Of a stretch of 64,000 nt of DNA, positions 14,567 through 59,197 are shown piece after piece. The translations under genes were made by a program, and so were the position numbers. Location of the stretch: assembly GCA_038496445.1 (NCBI GenBank), contig JALMLS010000287.1, positions 62,001-126,000 of the forward strand. The letters are read 5' to 3'. How positions within the stretch are numbered: the first letter of the stretch is position 1; each line of letters begins with the position of its first letter. Source of the DNA: Trichosphaerium sp. ATCC 40318. Lineage: Eukaryota; Protista; Tubulinea. The notes beneath the pieces were generated by a model, which saw nothing but the letters and a program-made list of their open reading frames with translations, made no database searches and was not told the DNA's origin.

Positions 14567-15744
14567 ATGGAACCCATACTGAACAGGGAAGCGCAAAATA
14601 AGGTTTTTAAAGATTATTCACTTGACATTGAGCTGTTAGACCTTCCAACAGAGATACTTGCACATATACTCGGCTATTTGGAGCGGTTTTATAGATTTTC
14701 TGTTTCTCAAAGCTGTAAATGTTTATTAGACGTCATACACCATCACATTGGTTACAACTATATACAATTAAGCTCAAGTAATGATTGTCAACGCCTATCA
14801 GGGAGTCCTCTTCTAAAAAACACTCGTATTTCTTTTGAGAATTTCAATGAAGCAACAGATGCAGATATCGCTCTTCTTTCTGGTGTTGATGCTTTATACC
14901 TATGCCATAATGATAATATAACAGATGAAGGCTTAAAGTCTGTGGTTGGTGTAACTTTCCTTGAGATAAATGTTTGTAAGTTCACAGATGAAGGGATTAT
15001 ACCTCTTGTAAAGCATCTCAAACATATTGATTTGCATCAAGTTGATGGAGTTACAGAAAAGGCTTTGAAGCAACTGGATGGGATACCTTCCGTACACCTA
15101 GCTTATAGTAATGTGACAGACAATGTCTTACAATCACTAGCTAAAGTGCATACTATAGATTTATCAGGTTGTGGATTAATCACGGACTCTGGTATTGCAT
15201 CTATGGCCAATGTTCATTGTATATACTTAGATAATACATCAGTCACTGATGTAGGTGTTTCAGCGTTAGGAGGTGTACATACCATTGGCTTATCAAGCTG
15301 TAACCACATCACAGGTGAGTGCATGAAGAGTTTAAAAAATGTGAATACTATAGAGCTATCTAGTACAGCAGCTACTGACGATTGGATCAAACCACTTTCA
15401 TGTGTGCACACAATTCACTTATCATGGTGTAATGGTATCACTGCAGCGGGTATGAAACATCTTACACGAGTTTACTCCATCGACTTAGGGCATTCAAAAG
15501 CAACAGATGATTGGCTTGAACCACTTGCTAATGTTCACGAGATCCGCCTAAGTAAATGCCAGCTGACCATTGAGTGTACTAAATATCTTTCCAATGTACA
15601 CACCATAAACTTGGCGTATACTGGCGCTACAGACGAGTGGGAAAACTGTTAGGTGTAAAAGAGTTAACGATATATGGTTGCAGTGGTATTTCAAACGCAG
15701 GTATTAGCTTACTACAGGATAGAGGTGTGATAGTGCACAAGTAA
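14567..15744 (+). CDS. Intronless F-box/leucine-rich repeat protein, with an apparent frameshift near the C-terminus
   Basis: LLDLPTEILAHILGYL F-box and about 12 LRRs of type VHTIDLSxxxITD. The ORF stops at 15652, but another frame continues KLLGVKELTIYGCSGISNAGISLLQDRGVIVHK to TAA at 15742-15744. Confidence 0.85.
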
Positions 15745-28479: not shown

Positions 28480-28871
28480 ATTTTGTTTACTAATTAGACT
28501 GTTTTGTAGTTCCTGATAAAGATCCTGATGGCATGTAAACACCACGCTCTTTTTTGTTTGTTTGTACACTTTTCAAACTTTGGTATGGCATGTCACAGTT
28601 ATTGAAAATAAATGCATCTGTACCTCCCTGATGCATGTCTTATTGAAGCAGTTTTTTCAAAATGTTGCTGTTAATCACGTGAGAAACTGACGCACAATAC
28701 TCACATATTGCCTTGTTGGTTCGTTTTTAATCCAAACAATTATGAGACTGTAAAAGTAGAGGCGTTCACAAGAAAGAAAAAGGTGCCACAGATACCAAAA
28801 GGGGTGATTTTAGCAAGAAAATTTTTTATTGTACAGAAAAAAACAAATAAGTTTTTGTTTTTTGATTTTCG

Positions 28872-30979
28872 CTAAGCCTTGAATGTCTTTACAAGCTGTG
28901 TAATGACACCCTTACATATTGGACAAGGCATACCATTTGCTGTAAGTTGTTGTCCACAATCATTACAACAACAAACATGTCCACTAAACATCAATATAAG
29001 TACGAAAACATTTATGTAAAACGAAAAATCGACAAATACAAAATATCCACGAAATGCCTTTTGTATCCAGCAAAAAACACTGACAAGTCTTTTCAATACA
29101 AATCAGGGAAGCTTTTAAATTGACGTCCATGTTAAACGAAAACTTGACACCAGGTTGGACACTAAAGAAAGAAAAAAAATCCAATGCAAAAAAAAAGTTT
29201 TTGTTCCGAATCTGCATACGCACCAAGGTACAATAACAGTATTGATTTGAGCGTCAAAACAAATTTTACATTCATTTTCATCATCTAAACAAGTCAAATA
29301 AGCGTTCAGGATTGGTAAGAAGATTAAAGTGTCAAACTAATTTCAACAACAAAAAAACTGAATCATACCATCGTCATCAATAAGTGTTGCTGCAGCATTA
29401 CCATTACTAGTTTTCATCTTTTTAGCAACATGCCCTACAGCTACATCATCTGTATCTTCACTAAAACCCTCGTTAAAAATCAACACAACGACAATGGGCC
29501 AAACACAAACCTATCATCTTCTACTTCTGCAGCTAAAAAGGAAAATGTCAGCAAGCAAAAAAAAAACCTAAGATTCTTTACCTGCTTCAGAGTCTCCATA
29601 TGCGATCCATGATACTTGAGCACCATATACTTTAGAGTCATTCCATGTACCAAGCTTTATTTCAAAAGCAGCATCACAGTGTGCTTGATCTGCAGCACTT
29701 ACGCGCAAATCAACATCTTCAATAACTGAAATATCCACCGTGCTTAGCATCGGTACAACGGTTGGGGTATTTTTGAATGGTGATGGAAATGGGATATTAT
29801 GTGTGAGAGAACGTCCTCCTTTTCCCTATTAAATACTTAGAAAGATAGATAATCGCAAAGGACAGAACAATGTCAAAAGCAGTAAAATGTTGTTTGTTTT
29901 TGGTACGTACTTTGTGTAGTTTGTATGCGGCATCATCTCGTTTAAATGCTTTCCTTCCTACGAGGATTTTACCACCAGGTGCATTCATAAGTTTTGGGTC
30001 TATAGCAAACCAAACAGCAGAGCAACCCCATAACTTTGTGTCTAAATAACAAAAAAACAATCAACACACTACTCCCAAGTTAACTATTTACTTTACCTTT
30101 CCATGTACCCAAAATAGCCTCAAATCCACTTGATGTCACGTTAGCTACTCTTGTTGTACATCTCCTAATTATAACATTAACAACAGAGAACAAGTAGCGA
30201 TGTAAACAGAAAGTTAAATTCAGTGAAACTCAAAACGGTTTTGTGACGATAAAATATCCAAAAACGAATCATACATGTCTCCATCGTTGATTACATCAAG
30301 CAAACATAACGCAATACACATCTCAGGCTTGGCGCTGAACTTTTTCTTGAACTTTATGGCCTGTTTACACTCTCTCAAGCCCTTACTTTTGTGTAATTTG
30401 TAATTTGCTGTAGTTTTTTTCCAATCAACTTTCCCGCTTTGTATGCGCGCTCCTGTTGAAAAAAAATAAAATCAGCGCACTGCCTTGGTTATTTAAATGC
30501 CTGTGGGCGATGATTTGAGAGTGTACAGGTTTTTTGATTGTTTTTTGCATTGAAACGGTTGTACATACCGTCTTGGTTTGCTTGGTCCACATCATAAGCA
30601 AACCATGTTGCTGCGACCGACCAAACGTGCGTTTCTTCCCATGTACCAATATTAAGTTTAAATCCAGACGTAGTAATGTTTGAAGGCCATACTTTGAGTC
30701 TTGGAAAGGTTAGCGGTAAAATAACTTGTCAAAAGTTACCTAAAGTCGTCTTCACCATTTATAACATCTATTAATGACATGGAACATACTACGTGCGGTT
30801 TGGTGTCGAATTCATTCTCAAAGTAAATCTTCTTGAAATACGTTCTATCACCCTCTCCCTCATCCAGTTTCCAACCCTTTGTACTACTTTTAGCATGTAC
30901 TCTCCCACTTTCAATACAAAATGCTATTTTACGTCAGTAACACGCCTTAAAATAGCAACCTACGCCACTCTTCAGCCAT
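28872..30979 (-). CDS. Three tandem H-type lectin (discoidin-like) domains fused to a C-terminal C3HC4 RING finger
   Basis: Repeats NITTSGFKLNIGTWEETHVWSVAATWFAY, NVTSSGFEAILGTWKDTKLWGCSAVWFAI and FEIKLGTWNDSKVYGAQVSWIAY. RING CKICFDAQINTVIVPCGHVCCCNDC...CPICK. No signal peptide (MAEEW...). Confidence 0.85.
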
Positions 30980-31093
30980 TGTACACCTCTCAAACGTTTC
31001 TAAGAATAATTGAACATATTTGACTCTTAGGCCACATTAACTGATTTCTGATTGCAGTACAAAGGGCTCTTTTATTCCTCCCGTACATTGGCT

Positions 31094-31628
31094 TTAACAA
31101 GGCGTTCTAGGCTCACAGCACGTTCCTTTTACATCACATGTCGTCGAATTTGTAGCATTCCAAGTCATTCCTTGGCACTGTGTTTTGCATTGGCCGAGGT
31201 AAAACTAGGCGTGTTTAGCCAAGAGCTAAGTTGGCAATGTAAACGTACTTCAGAATTCGCGCACATTACTGTACCCTCAGCTTTTTCTGATCCACAAATC
31301 GATACGTCGGTATCGCAAAGAGCATAACTAGGCCGGGTTAAGCGTCAAACAATTATAGATTGTGAAATGGTTGTAGAAGTTTCTGCCATAGCGTTGGTAG
31401 CTCTCTTGACGCTTGTACTGGCGACAACGTACCCCCAAATGGAGAAATCGCAGGTGTTCGTAATGTAACAGTCTCCAGTTGTTCTATCCCACTTGTTTTG
31501 TAAGCACGGTACTGCTTCTACACTGTATTAGGAGGAAAAGTACATTGAACACTTTCCGACGTACCAACAACGCAAACGAATACAAATACAACGAAGCAAG
31601 CTAAAAGTGTGGTGTTTATGCGTGTCAT
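31094..31628 (-). CDS. Small secreted cysteine-rich protein (not in ORF track)
   Basis: Signal peptide MTRINTTLLACFVVFVFVCVVEA. Four phase-consistent exons ending FYLGQCKTQCQGMTWNATNSTTCDVKGTCCEPRTPC, then stop. Confidence 0.6.
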
Positions 31629-35635: not shown

Positions 35636-36149
35636 ACGTTATCTAATTACCCAATCACACAACAAGTAAATAAACTTGGCACATGTAGCATAAAATAAAA
35701 TTCTGAAAAAAAAACAGAACAAACACAATAATCGTTTGAAGTTGTCTACTTTATCAAAGCCATAAAGCACAACAATTGAAGTAGCATACTCTATTCAAGG
35801 TCAATAGAGAGAGTGTCATAAGAGGATAGATCTCCTTGGGTATTCATAAATTAGCACGTTTCTCATTTGGGACGTAAAGTGTTAAAACAGGCATATTTCT
35901 GTCAAGAGCATTTCCTTAACCCACCTAAGTCAACAAACCCAGTGGGTGGAACTAATAGAAGAAAAATTGTGGTAACCTTTGTGATAGAAGAACAAAAACC
36001 AGAATTTATGGGAATATTTATAGCGTTATAATAACACTTTACATTTGAACACATGGTGTTCACAGAACGGTTTACTGGTGATAACGTCTTTTGAGAAAGC
36101 TTTTGAGACTTGGGCCACTAGTGACCAGGATAAAGAGACTGCTCAAAAG

Positions 36150-37094
36150 ATGTCAGAGGAAAAATTGGAATCTCTTTTCAAATCTTTTAGTGACGAACTC
36201 AAAACGCAGAAGGCAACATTCTTGGAGAAGTCCAAAGAGCTCAAGGACCGGTTAAAACAGTTTGAAGACGAAAAACTATTAATGTCATCTAAAACAAGCA
36301 AATCAGATATCATTGAGCTAAACATTGGTGGCACGTTGATGTCTACCACTCGAAACACTCTCTGCCTCATTCCAGGATCAATGCTCGAAATTATGTTTAG
36401 CGGGCGTTGGGAAGACAAGCACATCCTAGATAAGAACGATCACGTGTTCCTTGATATGAACCCTCAACACTTCGCTGTCATATTGAATTCACTCAGAGTA
36501 CTGCCTTATAAATCAAATGAACATGCTCTTTCTAAAGTAGTTGAACTCATGCGAGAAGATGAAGATTTTGCAGCTCTTGTAGACTACCTTGGGATTACTG
36601 ACACAAAAGTGTCGTCACGTGACAGCTTTTCATTGGAACAACACGCAGGACCTATCTCCGTTTCTCCTACAAAAGTCGAGCTACTAGCTAATAGACATGG
36701 CGTTGTTGTTGGCACAAACACTTTCGTAGATAATGCTGTTTGGACTTTAAAAGTAACACAAGCAAAGAGTTGGCTTTTTCTCGGTATCATTCAAGAATCA
36801 GACGTAACAAAGATTGACCCTTATTCATACTCATCATTGAATACATGTGGATGGACAGGACGCTATGTATATAATTGTGGAAAAGAAATAGAAGACAAAG
36901 AGCAGAACAGATATAAAGCTACAGAAAATTGTATTATGACTGTGACTCTAGCAAAGGACTCACTTATAATGGAGTATAATGATACCAAAGATACTATGAC
37001 AATACCAACTGGATGTAAATGGCGTTTGTATGTTAATTTAGGCTTTGTAGGAGACTCAGTAGAAATTTTAGAGAATTATTTTATAAATTACTAA
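36150..37094 (+). CDS. Intronless KCTD-type BTB/POZ protein with coiled coil and beta-rich (SPRY-like) C-terminus
   Basis: IIELNIGG..MSTTRNTL..PGSMLEIMFSGRW...VFLDMNPQHFAVILNSLR. First in-frame ATG at 36150. Confidence 0.85.
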   Translation: MSEEKLESLFKSFSDELKTQKATFLEKSKELKDRLKQFEDEKLLMSSKTSKSDIIELNIGGTLMSTTRNTLCLIPGSMLEIMFSGRWEDKHILDKNDHVFLDMNPQHFAVILNSLRVLPYKSNEHALSKVVELMREDEDFAALVDYLGITDTKVSSRDSFSLEQHAGPISVSPTKVELLANRHGVVVGTNTFVDNAVWTLKVTQAKSWLFLGIIQESDVTKIDPYSYSSLNTCGWTGRYVYNCGKEIEDKEQNRYKATENCIMTVTLAKDSLIMEYNDTKDTMTIPTGCKWRLYVNLGFVGDSVEILENYFINY

Positions 37095-54905: not shown

Positions 54906-57149
54906 ATGCGCTCTGTAGTAAGAGTTTCTGCACCTACAGCAACTAAAACTGTTGAAAAAGATGTACACTGCACCAACAGGCACTACAACAACGGTCCATC
55001 CAACTACAGGCCTTATTCCAGTAAACGGACATTTTACAGTTCAGTACGCTTTCTACTTTACGATTCGACATGTGTACCAGCGATTTTTTCAAACAAGACT
55101 TTTATTAAGGTTGCTATTTTGTTCTCGTCCGCCCGCGCCTTTATCTTCATTTCTAACCGTCTTATTTGATAGGGTTTTAAAGAACAAAACAATAAACGAT
55201 TGCAAGAAACACGTGTTCATAAAGATGAAGAAGGAAACGACAACAGCGGTAGTTTAGAAGGAGAATGTAAAGAATGGCATGAAAACGGACAATTAAGTTG
55301 CAAGTACTTTGTGAAGGATGGCAAGAAAGAAGGCGACATAGAATGTTGGGATGAAAATGGTGAGATGTATTTGAAGGGATGTTTTTCAAACGGTGATAGT
55401 GCACGTGTTGATCCGAACAAGTGGTTACATTACAACAGCGAGTTTAGAGCAGTTTCTATGTTAAATGAGGTTGTACCTCGCCTTTCTAGTGTCCATACTA
55501 TTGATCTTTCTTTTTGCAATGATATTACAGATAGCAAACTACGTGACCTTTCAGGTGTTCATACAATCAAGCTCGGTAGTTGTTATTCACGTGAACTCAC
55601 ACACAAGGGTATTGAAGCTCTCGCTGGCGTTCATACTATTGACCTATCACGGAATGGGAGTGAAGAAATCAAGAGAGGGCTCAAAGCGCTAAATAGTGTT
55701 CATACTATTAACTTGCAACATTGTGGTGCTATACGTGATGACTATCTCAAAGCTCTTGCTGGCGTTTATTCGATCAACCTTGAAAGTTGTGAAGTGACTG
55801 ACGAAGGTGTCAAAGCTCTGAAAGGTGTTCATACAATTAACCTTTCTTGCACTAATGTAACGGATGAAGGTATTAAAGCACTTAAAGGTGTTCATACCAT
55901 TAACCTTGACAACTGCCAATACATATCAGATGAAGGCATTAAGGCACTCAAAGGCGTTCATACAATTAGGCTTAATACTTGCAACATAACTGATGAAGGC
56001 ATCAAACAACTGAAAGGTGTTCATACTATCGATTTATCATTCACCGCAGTATCAGATAGAGGCATTAAGGAACTTTCTGGTGTTCACAGTATTGGCCTTT
56101 TAACTACAAATGTAACAGATGATGGTATTAGAGCGCTTAAAGGTGTTCACACCATAAAACTTGCACATTGCAGACATATATCAGATGAAGGAATTTCATT
56201 TCTCAACGGCGCTAATACTATTGACCTTTCCGCTACTCCAATAACAGATAAGGGTATCAAGGCTCTTGCTGGTGTCTATTTTATAGACCTAAGTTATACT
56301 TCAGTAACTAATGAAGGTATTAAAGCGCTAAAAGGTGTTCATACTATTAGCCTACAACAAACAAATGTGACGAATGTGAATGAACTTGTCGGGGTTTCTG
56401 CTATTAACCTTCAAGAGACTATGGTAACAGATGAAGGCATTCAAAACCTCGCTGGCGTACATACCATTGACCTCTTTAATTGTACAGGAGTAACAAGTGA
56501 GGGTATCAAGGCACTTGCAGGTGTTCATACTATTGATCTTGGTTGTACTAATGTGACAGATGATGGCATCAAAGCTCTTAAAGGTGTTCACTCTATTGAC
56601 CTTAGGGACACTTCAGTAACCGATGAAGGCATTAACACTCTCAACGGGGTTCATACGATTATCCTTGATAACGCTCCAGTTACAGATGAAGGGATTAAGA
56701 AACTTGCTGGTGTTCATACTATCGATCTTTGCGATTGCCAAGAAATAACCACCGAAGGTATAAAAGAGCTCAGAGGTGTTCATACTATTAACTTGACCCG
56801 CACTACAGTAGAAGATGAAGGTGTCAAAGAGCTCAAGGGCGTTCATACCATTAACCTTTGTGAAACAGACGTGACTGATGACGGCATCAAAGCGCTTTCT
56901 GGTGTACATACTATTGACCTTTGTAGAACTAAAGTTACAGACAAATCTATAGAAGCACTTAAAGGTGTGAAAGCCATTAATCTTGAAGGATGCGAAGGCA
57001 TAACAACAAAAGATCCTCTCTCTTTCTATGGCATTTCAACCCTTAATCTTATGGACACTAGTGTCGAAACATACAATATTAGAATGCCTCCTGGGTTTGA
57101 ATTTTATGACTTTAATGATTATGAAATAAATATCAACAAACCATGGTGA
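54906..57149 (+). CDS. MORN-variant repeats (about 2) plus about 23 LRRs, one 5' intron
   Basis: Exon 1 (54906-55043) splices in phase 0 via intron 55044-55172 into the long ORF. EGECKEWHENGQL repeats, then GVHTIDLxxTxVTDEGIKAL repeats. Confidence 0.85.
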
Positions 57150-57724
57150 TAACCTTAATAAAACAATTACATTACACCTTTTTTTAAAATCTCTGTCCTG
57201 TCTTGCTTTACAGTTTCAATATGTATGTAAACTTCCATAAAATACACGCTACAAGAGCTATGTATATCAACCAAATGTTGCTTTTTCTTCAGTGTAACCT
57301 CAAGTGTAAGTTATGAACGCCGTTAAATAGTGCAAGCCTCGTGTCGTAAGAAAAATTAGAATGTAAATGCATTGACCATTGCAATCTTCAAGTTGGCAAC
57401 TGGCAGGTTCATAATTATGGTAATGTTGGCACGTCAGCGTCCACGTTTCCGTCTTGTGGCTAAAAATCCGAATAATGTGCGAATAAGGAACTTACCTATA
57501 ACAACGTCTCAGATTACTCTTGTTACATGTACAGTTACAATGTATCCTCCCTAAATTAACTTGAAAGAGGAATACAATTAGCCAAAACTTGTGCTGATAA
57601 ATCAGTAATTGCCAGGTCAAGCGTTCGTTTTACCCAATCACGTGTACAAGGCAAAACTACCTCAAGCTAAACGGTGTTCATTGTCCTAGCATTAACGGCA
57701 AGACGACGCGGATAATTGCTATCA

Positions 57725-59197
57725 ATGGCAACACAACGCAAGGTACTTGCTCTTGTTACTCATACGTATGCGTTAGGTCCTATTTTAACGACTAAATAGG
57801 AGAATACAACAAAATTGGGTTATGTCAATCTATTACAGCTTCCAACCGAGCTACATCTCGATATTATCGATCTAGACTATGAAGTGTACACAAAATGGCC
57901 TGTTTTATCCTCACAAGCGGCAATGAATACAAGGTTTGATGACGACTTAGAAAAACATGGAAAATGGGTGAAAAAGGGATATGAGCGATACAGCGCAGTC
58001 ACTCATGTACAGGAGACAAATACTTTGTTTGGACATAACCTTTGTGAATATGTAAAACAATTTAAAAGGACCATGAAAACACGTGTAGAATATTACTCTA
58101 AACAAGGTTGCAGAGGAAATCAAATAGTGAACTTAAGACATCCTACATTACAAGTTATACATATTGAACGCTGGAGACATGGTAAACTACATGGAGAGTT
58201 CAAAGGATTCCATGAACTAAAACGTGATATTGGAGGTGATCTAATAGTAGCAGAGAAAGGACGGTATGTCAATGGTGAGCTTGGTGGGGAGTACAAGTGT
58301 TGGGATCAAAACAATGTTTTGGTGAAGAAGTGTAACTTTGTGAATGGTAAGCTTCAAGGAGAATATAAACTTTGGGTTCCGTACAATAGTGTTGATTGTA
58401 TATCACAGAGAGGTACTTTTGTTGATGATAAACTTAATGGGATATGTGAGTTTTGGTATAGTGGTAGCATTAGCAAACAGTGTTATTTTGAACATGATAA
58501 ACCTAAAGGAGAGTACCAATCGTGGAGTGAAGCTAAATTAATTGAAAAAGGAGATTATGTCAATGGTGTACAAGAAGGGGAATGGAATGAATGGAATGAG
58601 TCTGGCCAATCATGTCATCAAGTAAACTATGTGAATGGGAAAAGAGAAGGATACTTAAAGTTCTGGCATGATAATGGTCAATTGCAGAGTCAGACTAGTT
58701 ATGCCAATGATGTAGAAGAAGGAGAGAGTAAGGAATGGGATGAAAACGGCCGATTGGTTTTTTGTAAAACTTACTCTGGTGGTCATTTGCATGGAGAGTA
58801 TAAGCATTGGTATGAAAATGGGCAATTGCAAATTCAATGTAATTACATCAATGGTAGCAGAGAGGGACTTTGTAATCATTGGAATGAAAAGGGCATATTA
58901 GAATTACAGATCACTTATGTAAATGATAAACATGAAGGGGATTACAAGCTATGGTATGATAATGGCCAATTGAGAGAGCAATGCAACTATGTAAATCATA
59001 AACGAGAAGGTGAAGACAAGTATTGGTATGACAATGGTCAATTGAAACAGCTAAGTAATTATGTAAATGGTTTATTGGAAGGAGAGGTAAAGGTTTGGTA
59101 CGACAATGGCCAATTGAAACAACTGAGCAATTATGTCAATGGTAAATTGGTCGGAGAGTGCAAGTGTTGGAATAGAAACGGTCAGTTGAAAGAGTAG
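57725..59197 (+). CDS. F-box-like N-terminus plus about 13 MORN-variant (YwqK-like) repeats, one 5' intron
   Basis: MATQRK, intron 57743-57799, then ENTTKLGYVNLLQLPTELHLDII. 24-aa repeats GEYKxWYDNGQLxxxxNYVNGK. Confidence 0.85.

Follow-up and report, generated by a model that had tools for sequence, protein, structure and literature searches.

The window, a 64,000-nucleotide stretch of DNA from Trichosphaerium sp. ATCC 40318, carries on its minus strand a spliced gene for a protein of 412 amino acids, whose coding sequence (28872..30979, minus strand) begins with an ATG at 30979 and ends with the stop codon at 28872, precisely where the first-pass annotation had placed it. The coding sequence is divided into 11 exons, of which exons 1-6 lie at 30979-30964, 30923-30740, 30699-30569, 30452-30275, 30164-30097, and 30041-29911, and exons 7-11 at 29825-29582, 29532-29511, 29460-29369, 29284-29224, and 28983-28872. 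The ten introns measure 40-240 nt and all have GT..AG borders, and each is reproduced by spliced transcript contigs, which were drawn from three runs belonging to two studies. RNA joints also match the least conspicuous parts of the model, namely the 16-nt exon 1, the acceptor at 29460 and a micro-exon of 22 nt in the linker region (29511..29532, minus strand; joints 29460/29511 and 29532/29582 in transcript contigs X1 and X2). The mRNA (28826..30991, minus strand) has its 5' end at about 30991 and a 3' UTR that reaches to at least 28826; a single 1306-nt contig, at 28826-30991, contains the 5' end, all ten joints and the 3' UTR. At 30991 the unaligned 5' letters of this contig read GAGTACGGGG (RNA strand), which we take to be the SMART template-switch oligo and hence to mark the cap site. 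As this one contig covers all exons, the lectin and RING parts belong to one mRNA, so that separate transcripts for the two parts are ruled out and the fusion proposed in the first-pass annotation stands. A prokaryote-style ORF reading of the locus was likewise rejected, since the gene is spliced and the mechanical ORF list accordingly contains only fragments of it. The gene is single-copy and the sole H-lectin gene detected in the 70-Mb genome; a search of the same genome for the galectin family gave no match, but its control also matched nowhere.

The encoded protein comprises three H-type lectin repeats, followed by an acidic linker and, at the C-terminus, a C3HC4 RING, the layout that had been read from the DNA beforehand and that is borne out by Pfam scans and by three copies of the GTW..(T/S)..W/Y..W.A signature in the spliced protein. 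Repeat 1 (residues 6-108, exons 1-3, 30576..30964, minus strand) is matched by H_lectin (PF09458) with 20.2 bits in exon 2 and 36.6 bits in exon 3, repeat 2 (residues 111-213, exons 3-6, 29980..30569, minus strand) gives partial matches of 15.3 bits in exon 4 and 12.7 bits in exon 5, and repeat 3 (residues 217-318, exons 6-8, 29531..29970, minus strand) is matched in exon 7 with 47.6 bits (E 1.8e-12). Exons 3 and 7 exceed the curated H_lectin cut-off of 24 bits, and the pieces of repeat 2 fall under it only because introns split this repeat; repeats 1, 2, and 3 are mutually alignable, and exon 7 also matches Helix pomatia agglutinin (HPA) in the PDB (2CCV, E 1.8e-7). The linker (residues 319-360, 29271..29530, minus strand) is rich in acidic residues: counted over 319-361, 15 of 43 residues are Asp or Glu. 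The RING (residues 361-412, exons 10-11, 28875..29270, minus strand) is recognized in the last exon by itself, with 28.4 bits for zf-C3HC4_3 against a cut-off of 27. The highest mean Kyte-Doolittle hydropathy over 19 residues is 1.28 and the first 20 residues are hydrophilic, therefore the protein has neither a signal peptide nor a transmembrane segment, in agreement with the first-pass annotation. An N-terminal hydrophobic core that could serve as an export signal is absent from all 23 RING-bearing relatives whose sequence starts with Met, and in all of these the first lectin domain begins no more than 11 residues from the Met. A reading as a secreted lectin was dropped, as a hydrophobic N-terminus is found neither here nor in the RING-bearing relatives.

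A rigid body made of the three lectin domains, as originally envisaged, is predicted for two orthologues. The AF2 model of the Copromyxa orthologue P0001 (pLDDT 87.9, pTM 0.74) is disordered in the linker alone, where the segment 323-363, which matches the linker of the window protein, has a pLDDT below 50. Residues 10-314 of P0001 superpose on a fungal tri-H-lectin cluster with a TM of 0.94 and an rmsd of 1.8 Å over 263 residues, and the Atlas's own model of the orthologue P0012 matches the same cluster. In Foldseek comparisons of the P0001 model, the target TM was 0.79 for HPA (2CCV) and 0.82 for SLL-2 (3WMP). From these models we infer that the three repeats may pack as one rigid body, much as the subunits of Helix agglutinin and discoidin do in their homotrimers. 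The residues equivalent to the sugar pocket are Arg67/Trp87/Trp93 in repeat 1, Arg171/Trp191/Trp197 in repeat 2, and Arg277/Trp297/Tyr303 in repeat 3, hence all three repeats keep the Arg and the Trp as well as the aromatic residue six positions on, which correspond to R63/W83/Y89 of HPA and W235/Y241 of discoidin. Across the family, pocket residues are well retained in repeat 3 only (20-27 of 28 sequences), which is the best-conserved repeat, and the Arg and Trp of repeat 1 are kept in only 13 of 22-23 sequences. Two further HPA residues, the GalNAc contacts Asp26 and His84, are represented by Glu, Lys, and Lys and by Glu, Lys, and Asn, respectively, in repeats 1-3. Both positions vary family-wide, so that a specificity for Gal/GalNAc cannot be presumed and the lectin body could bind protein instead.

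The RING, which is split by the 240-nt intron, has all eight zinc ligands (C-x2-C ... C-x-H-x3-C-x2-C ... C-x2-C, read from the spliced sequence), and these are invariant or nearly so across the family. It also has an Ile after Cys1, a Pro before the last Cys pair, a Lys after the last Cys, and a Phe at position -3 of a 13-residue tail ending in TFKA, residues whose roles are familiar from cIAP, MDM2, and RNF4. Position -3 is Phe or Tyr in all 24 of the relatives' tails listed and aligns with the tail Tyr of MDM2, and the domain as such can be aligned to the RINGs of MDM2, MDM4, MUL1, cIAP1, and RNF4. The RING of P0001 shares 44% identity with that of cIAP2 (3EB5), at an rmsd of 1.7 Å. As in cIAP and MDM2, the RING of the family would probably act as a tail-swapped dimer, and it would recruit E2~ubiquitin; a complex prediction with two copies of the P0001 RING scored 0.25 against a mark of 0.32, which speaks neither for nor against a dimer. 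Within the linker, which is 43 residues long here and up to ~140 in other family members, lies a basic motif that resembles a nuclear localization signal (NLS), AKKMKT (residues 337-342, 29409..29426, minus strand). The motif is c-Myc-like, reading PPAKKxKL in several members, and the pattern [PA]K[KR]xK occurs in 11 of 26 family linkers where 0.68 would be expected, a number that none of 2000 shuffles reached. The conservation of KKxK suggests that the protein may also enter or act in the nucleus, and a motif of this kind leads, at least in part, away from a role centred on the phagosome.

Judged by sequence comparison, the gene is an orthologue in a family that is spread across at least four lineages of Amoebozoa. 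Residues 1-410/412 of the window protein align to the family protein P0153 at 38% identity, residues 1-412 align to Copromyxa P0001 at 37%, and the Ceratiomyxa, Planoprotostelium, and Protostelium proteins are collinear at 32%; proteins of the same layout were found in these four genera, in Mastigamoeba and in many metagenomes. H_lectin was detected in 27 of 27 members and zf-C3HC4_3 in 26 of 27, with three H_lectin domains per orthologue, and a RING with exactly 13 residues past the last Cys is present in 22 among the best 150 representatives. In a tree of the individual repeats, repeat labels require 16 changes, compared with 41.7 for shuffled labels, and none of 200 shuffles gave so low a number; r1, r2, and r3 of the window protein each group with the same-numbered repeats of relatives (SH-aLRT 85-91, which is moderate). 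As the repeats cluster by position, the triplication predates the family. An ESM Atlas feature search confirmed H_lectin and found no cluster of ≥50 members that joins H_lectin and RING; a word-index protein search with the family alignments yielded 6 and 5 proteins, and some sequences of the query alignment itself were not among them, hence the range of the family cannot be inferred from it. Outside this family, the tri-lectin cassette is fused to fungal NLR-type NTPases (NACHT_N, NPHP3_N), kinases, and proteases, which marks it as a portable sensor module and suggests a widely reused intra- and extracellular glycan sensor that has received little attention so far. Among the candidate pattern receptors of the Acanthamoeba genome paper is a protein with three H-lectins, and the supplement of the paper lists ACA1_383210 / L8GSR8 with three IPR019019 domains and IPR001370, the BIR label (“inhibitor of apoptosis domain”) (Acanthamoeba genome paper, 2013). 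This A. castellanii protein probably belongs to the family. The gene is thus an additional member of a known but functionally uncharacterized family: the literature yielded no functional study and no binding or ligase assay for any member, which upholds the view of the first-pass annotation that the architecture is uncharacterized, whereas the amoebozoan family and the Acanthamoeba listing of 2013 show that it is neither unique nor previously unnoticed.

The reading that we prefer, and on which our judgement is evenly balanced, is that the protein is a soluble nucleocytoplasmic E3 in which the cassette of three H-lectins recognizes the substrate, likely invading or luminal glycans, and ubiquitin is then deposited as a mark for autophagy. 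The lectin body could offer up to three non-identical pockets for Gal/GalNAc-type or deoxy-sugars at the grooves between repeats, and the flexible linker would bring proteins in the vicinity of the bound glycan within range of the RING. The likeliest ligands would be glycans that are normally non-cytosolic, such as those of a bacterial envelope, or luminal glycans bared by rupture of a phagosome or lysosome, and the protein, once bound to them, would deposit the ubiquitin mark for autophagy. By analogy with work on discoidins only, we infer a possible role in sensing damaged vacuoles or bacteria: discoidins are reported to reach bacteria after vacuole damage and then to bind mycobacterial glycolipids, and they are not recruited by sterile lysosome damage (Dictyostelium, 2026 preprint). 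The version of this reading in which exposed host glycans are sensed is therefore without precedent among H-lectins.

A rather unlikely alternative, which nevertheless carries the most weight after the preferred reading, is that the tri-lectin body has been co-opted as a protein-binding module for substrate choice, and that the ligase regulates an ordinary cytosolic or nuclear protein. NHR, SPRY, and FERM domains play this part in other zf-C3HC4_3 ligases, and the RING's closest neighbours in architecture are ligases that combine it with a recognition domain (Neuralized, MYLIP, LRSAM1, and MEX3C); the unconserved equivalents of Asp26 and His84 and the loss of pocket residues from repeats 1 and 2 in many members point the same way. 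However, the Arg, Trp, and aromatic residue persist three times over in the window protein and in repeat 3 across the family, mutation of the same aromatics in discoidin (W235/Y241) abolishes glycan binding, the H_lectin scores are bona fide, and HPA and SLL-2 are matched by the model of the orthologue, all of which argues against this alternative.

Cytosolic glycans of the Skp1, O-fucose, and O-GlcNAc types exist in amoebozoans and other protists. It is quite unlikely, in our estimate, that the protein reads such endogenous nucleocytoplasmic glycans (the Gal-capped hydroxyproline glycan of Skp1, O-fucose, or glycans of the O-GlcNAc type) and ubiquitinates their carriers. A soluble protein that lacks an export signal and has a c-Myc-like linker motif far above chance would fit this alternative, but the motif is absent from about half of the family and might just as well accept ubiquitin or bind lipid, and we found no evidence that ties H-type lectins to nucleocytoplasmic glycans. 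A further proposal, to which we give only a slim chance, is that the protein, with its single-chain pseudo-trimeric lectin, is a self-contained intracellular reader and writer that shuttles between nucleus and cytosol by means of KKxK, and that couples recognition of an invading or nucleocytoplasmic glycan directly to ubiquitination without an adaptor, a galectin or an SCF complex. Should this hold with an endogenous ligand of nucleus or cytosol, for instance O-fucose or the glycan of Skp1, the protein would be the first E3 of the lectin type to read glycosylation within the cell.

Sugar-recognizing ubiquitin ligases are an established kind, and the window protein is cytosolic and constitutively transcribed, which would fit a quality-control ligase like SCF-FBXO2/FBXO6, one that marks glycoproteins retrotranslocated from the ER for the proteasome. 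We regard such a role as very unlikely, as H-type lectins bind Gal/GalNAc or deoxy-sugar epitopes rather than the high-mannose N-glycans typical of ERAD, and as the Pfam scan found neither an F-box nor an FBA domain in any exon. Least probable is an unconventionally secreted agglutinin with an incidental or merely structural, dimerizing RING: discoidins are cytosolic yet exported by unconventional routes, and a RING dimer would pair two pseudo-trimers, much as in the HPA hexamer, but ~26 divergent members keep all eight zinc ligands, the Ile and Pro that contact the E2, and the aromatic residue of the tail, which is the pattern to be expected of a working E3.

In animals, cytosolic glycan sensing is linked to ubiquitin by separate parts, as in galectins with TRIM16/NDP52, SCF-FBXO27, LRSAM1, and RNF213, and it was in amoebae, their natural hosts, that intracellular bacteria evolved. 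On the preferred reading, an H-lectin fold welded to an IAP-like RING would provide a path from glycan detection to ubiquitin tagging within one protein. The protein is small, soluble, and readily expressed, so that its specificity and activity are directly testable.

Among known systems, the closest are the other members of the amoebozoan family, namely Planoprotostelium fungivorum PRP88554.1 / A0A2P6NX58 and the EukProt proteins of Copromyxa protea (P018313), Ceratiomyxa fruticulosa (P015255), Protostelium nocturnum (P015556), and Mastigamoeba balamuthi (P002182). They have in common a short N-terminus followed by three H_lectin domains; the acidic linker after these often contains KKxK, and the zf-C3HC4_3 RING has a tail of 13 residues. 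They align collinearly at 30-38% identity, the window protein sharing at most 37-38% with its nearest full-length member. Discoidins I and II of Dictyostelium (DscA, DscE) are likewise cytosolic amoebozoan H-type lectins with the pocket Trp and the aromatic six residues on. In contrast to the window protein, which has three lectins and a RING in one chain and starts directly with repeat 1, they combine a discoidin (F5/8C) domain at the N-terminus with a single H-lectin, form trimers of three chains, and lack a RING; no exon of the window gene matched F5_F8_type_C in the Pfam scan. HPA and the coral lectin SLL-2 have the same fold, and the equivalents of Arg63/Trp83/Tyr89 of HPA are kept in the window protein, but both are secreted, disulfide-linked homo-oligomers, and the equivalents of HPA Asp26 and His84 are not kept in the window protein. 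The RING belongs to the same zf-C3HC4_3 subclass as those of cIAP1/cIAP2/XIAP, MDM2/MDMX, and MUL1, which also form the very end of the chain, with an aromatic residue at -3 of a short tail, while the BIR, p53-binding, and transmembrane parts of these proteins are missing and a Lys replaces the Arg after the last Cys. The F-box proteins FBXO2/FBXO6/FBXO27 (Fbs) recognize glycans and LRSAM1 recognizes bacteria, and both share with the proposed ligase the logic of coupling cytosolic recognition to ubiquitination. Their recognition folds are unrelated to the H-lectin: LRSAM1, which also terminates in a zf-C3HC4_3 RING, uses an LRR, and Fbs require an SCF complex, whereas the window protein has lectin and RING in one chain and, by the Pfam scan, no F-box, FBA or LRR domain.

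The lectin-RING gene, which lies on the minus strand at 30979..28872, is real, expressed and single-copy, and encodes a soluble member of a conserved amoebozoan family, with three H-type lectin domains and a RING. Its spliced model starts and stops exactly where the first-pass annotation had placed the gene (28872-30979), and comprises 11 exons encoding 412 residues, with introns of 40-240 nt that are all GT..AG; the window as a whole has a G+C content of ~36%, and its genes are eukaryotic with short introns. In spliced contigs of this gene from three public RNA runs, which belong to two studies, 10/10 predicted introns are seen as joints with CT..AC ends, i.e. as GT..AG introns on the minus strand. 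The RNA contigs also confirm a first coding exon of 16 nt (30964-30979, minus strand) and a micro-exon of 22 nt (29511-29532, minus strand), for which the adjoining introns measure only 40-50 nt and which are easy for gene predictors to overlook. One contig of 1306 nt spans 28826 (in the 3' UTR) to 30991, and together with the ten joints it places lectin and RING on a single transcript, so that separate transcripts, the outcome named in the first-pass annotation as fatal to its reading, were not what was found. Past 30991 this contig carries ten foreign letters, which read GAGTACGGGG on the RNA strand and which we take to be the end of the SMART template-switch oligo, hence the start of the mRNA most likely lies ~12 nt before the ATG, with no coding exon farther upstream. 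A second, more abundant spliced minus-strand transcript occupies 31056-31300 (44-nt intron, 31205-31248), and its end near 31056 lies only ~65 bp upstream of the apparent transcription start at 30991, so that the two genes are very tightly packed, head to tail. The same 64 kb also holds long intron-free plus-strand ORFs (14567-15652, 36045-37094 and 55200-59197) for F-box+LRR, BTB and LRR/MORN-repeat proteins, that is, genes resembling ubiquitin-system substrate adaptors as well as repeat proteins. Within the 70.3-Mb assembly, H_lectin matches occur only in the lectin-RING gene, and exon 7 matches only itself.

A domain search run one exon at a time matched H_lectin in exons 2 and 3 (repeat 1), in exons 4 and 5 (repeat 2, weakly, because introns cut this repeat) and in exon 7 (repeat 3; 47.6 bits, E 1.8e-12), and zf-C3HC4_3 in the last exon. 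The repeats are mutually alignable at ~105 residues each, and the PDB matches of exon 7 are the Helix pomatia and Helix aspersa agglutinins and the coral lectin SLL-2, while the last exon aligns to the C-terminal half of the MDM2, MDM4, MUL1, cIAP1/2 and RNF4 RINGs, tail aromatic included. Between repeat 3 and the RING lies a linker of 43 residues (319-361), 15 of them Asp/Glu, and the proposed order of three H-lectin repeats, acidic linker and C-terminal RING is thereby upheld.

With exon 7 as query, HMMER run in full against 1.84 billion representative sequences returned 424 proteins at E <=0.001; 22 of the best 150 have a RING whose last Cys is followed by exactly 13 residues, and these 22 are concentrated at the top of the list. 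The protein aligns over residues 1-410 of 412 to the homologue P0153 (38%), over residues 1-412 to P0001 from Copromyxa protea (37%), at ~32% to relatives from Ceratiomyxa fruticulosa, Protostelium nocturnum and Planoprotostelium fungivorum (PRP88554.1, named just 'RING-type domain-containing protein' in the database), and at 29% to one from Mastigamoeba balamuthi; many more members come from metagenomes and metatranscriptomes. The M. balamuthi model P0013 lacks the linker and the first RING half, repeat 3 running directly into mid-RING, which is probably a mis-spliced annotation and not a real variant. The transcriptome of Ploeotia vitrea, a phagotrophic euglenid, contains a tri-H-lectin-RING sequence (P0007, 25% identity to the protein described here), which may be a genuine non-amoebozoan member or a contaminant derived from prey or from amoebae in the culture. 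H_lectin was found in all 27 aligned members and zf-C3HC4_3 in 26. In a single-repeat tree of the RING family, repeats 1, 2 and 3 cluster by position (16 label changes vs 41.7 when shuffled; supports moderate), so that the triplication predates the spread of the family.

The three-lectin unit extends beyond the RING proteins, as 129 of the 164 matched proteins with H-lectin domains have exactly three. In 63 longer, RING-less members (within P0016-P0149), from other lineages, the partners include astacin, matrixin (M10), aspartyl and trypsin-like proteases, protein kinase, ankyrin repeats, DM9, PKD and NLR-type NTPase heads (NACHT_N, NPHP3_N). Given these varied partners and the prevalent number of three, the unit behaves as a portable recognition module, which looks like a glycan sensor and of which the RING form is the amoebozoan use. 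An extreme tandem array is seen in P0015, a 4335-residue protein with 22 matched H-lectin stretches.

The nearest named orthologue, P0001, was folded with a family alignment of 27 sequences, giving a model with pLDDT 87.9 and pTM 0.74 in which disorder is confined to the linker (323-363). From the way pTM is computed, a chain of 420 residues with a floppy linker can reach such a value only if its lectin domains are confidently placed relative to one another, and we infer that all three are so placed. Residues 10-314 can be superposed on the separately predicted model of a fungal tri-H-lectin protein of 264 residues (TM 0.94, rmsd 1.8 A) and on astacin/M10 peptidases bearing the same cassette; the same holds for the model of Planoprotostelium P0012 provided by the Atlas. 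Single lectin domains match Helix pomatia agglutinin (HPA), SLL-2 and discoidin, and the RING matches cIAP2 (44% identity, rmsd 1.7 A) as well as cIAP1, XIAP, MUL1, MEX3C, IDOL and BIRC7. The lectin body may have an HPA-like threefold symmetry.

Pocket residues were placed on HPA through the exon 7 alignment, with roles taken in part from a discoidin preprint. All three repeats keep the Arg (R67, R171, R277), the Trp (W87, W191, W297) and an aromatic six residues after the Trp (W93, W197, Y303); conservation in the family is highest in repeat 3 (Arg 27/28, Trp 27/28, aromatic 20/28) and lowest in repeat 1. The equivalents of HPA Asp26 and His84 are not conserved, so that a specificity other than for GalNAc is possible. 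In the RING all eight ligands are present; Ile follows the first Cys, Pro precedes the last Cys pair, Lys follows the last Cys, and the tail ends TFKA, with Phe at position -3, where every relative's tail listed has Phe or Tyr. The lectin body would bind glycans, the RING would be an active, probably dimeric E3, and the two together would ubiquitinate proteins near the bound glycan; taken as a whole, this glycan-directed E3 reading has about an even chance.

Alternatively, the lectin fold could serve protein binding, a reading that the non-conserved Asp26 and His84 equivalents favour and the retained Arg, Trp and aromatic disfavour. The protein could also be a reader of endogenous nucleocytoplasmic glycans. 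The linker contains a basic motif, AKKMKT, absent from the first-pass annotation, and [PA]K[KR]xK occurs in 11/26 family linkers, often as PPAKKxKL, compared with a mean of 0.68 and never >4 in 2000 trials with shuffled linkers. This motif is reminiscent of a c-Myc-type monopartite nuclear localisation signal, and it may leave room for a nuclear role. An ERAD-like role is a further alternative. A secreted agglutinin fits poorly with a hydrophilic N-terminus and a hydrophobicity peak (19-residue window) of 1.28 that falls inside the RING, from which the protein should be soluble and not exported, as the proposed lack of a signal peptide or TM had implied, and with the 23 RING-bearing members starting with Met, none of which has an N-terminal hydrophobic core and in which the first lectin domain starts <=11 residues from the Met.

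Public databases already contain the tri-H-lectin-RING architecture from several amoebae, and the gene is a fairly divergent, newly found member of this known family. A three-H-lectin version was remarked on, as a candidate pattern receptor, in the 2013 Acanthamoeba genome paper, whose supplement lists A. castellanii ACA1_383210 (L8GSR8) with three IPR019019 domains and IPR001370, a BIR label that may reflect the IAP-like RING, and a 2024 review treats L8GSR8 as a putative surface receptor, mentioning RING or ubiquitin nowhere (PMC11377244). The proposal that the architecture is uncharacterised was borne out, as full-text searches pairing H-type lectins with RING/ubiquitin ligases or with Acanthamoeba yielded no functional study of such proteins.

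For the glycan-directed E3 reading, known systems suggest a setting. Dictyostelium discoidins are cytosolic H-type lectins that gather on Mycobacterium marinum after vacuole damage, are not recruited upon sterile damage, and depend on their pocket Trp and Tyr (W235/Y241, W238/Y244) (2026 preprint, 10.64898/2026.06.18.733164). By analogy with discoidins, LRSAM1 and FBXO27, the likeliest setting, though itself short of an even chance, would be surveillance of glycans misplaced in the cytosol, chiefly those of bacterial envelopes once a vacuole has been damaged.
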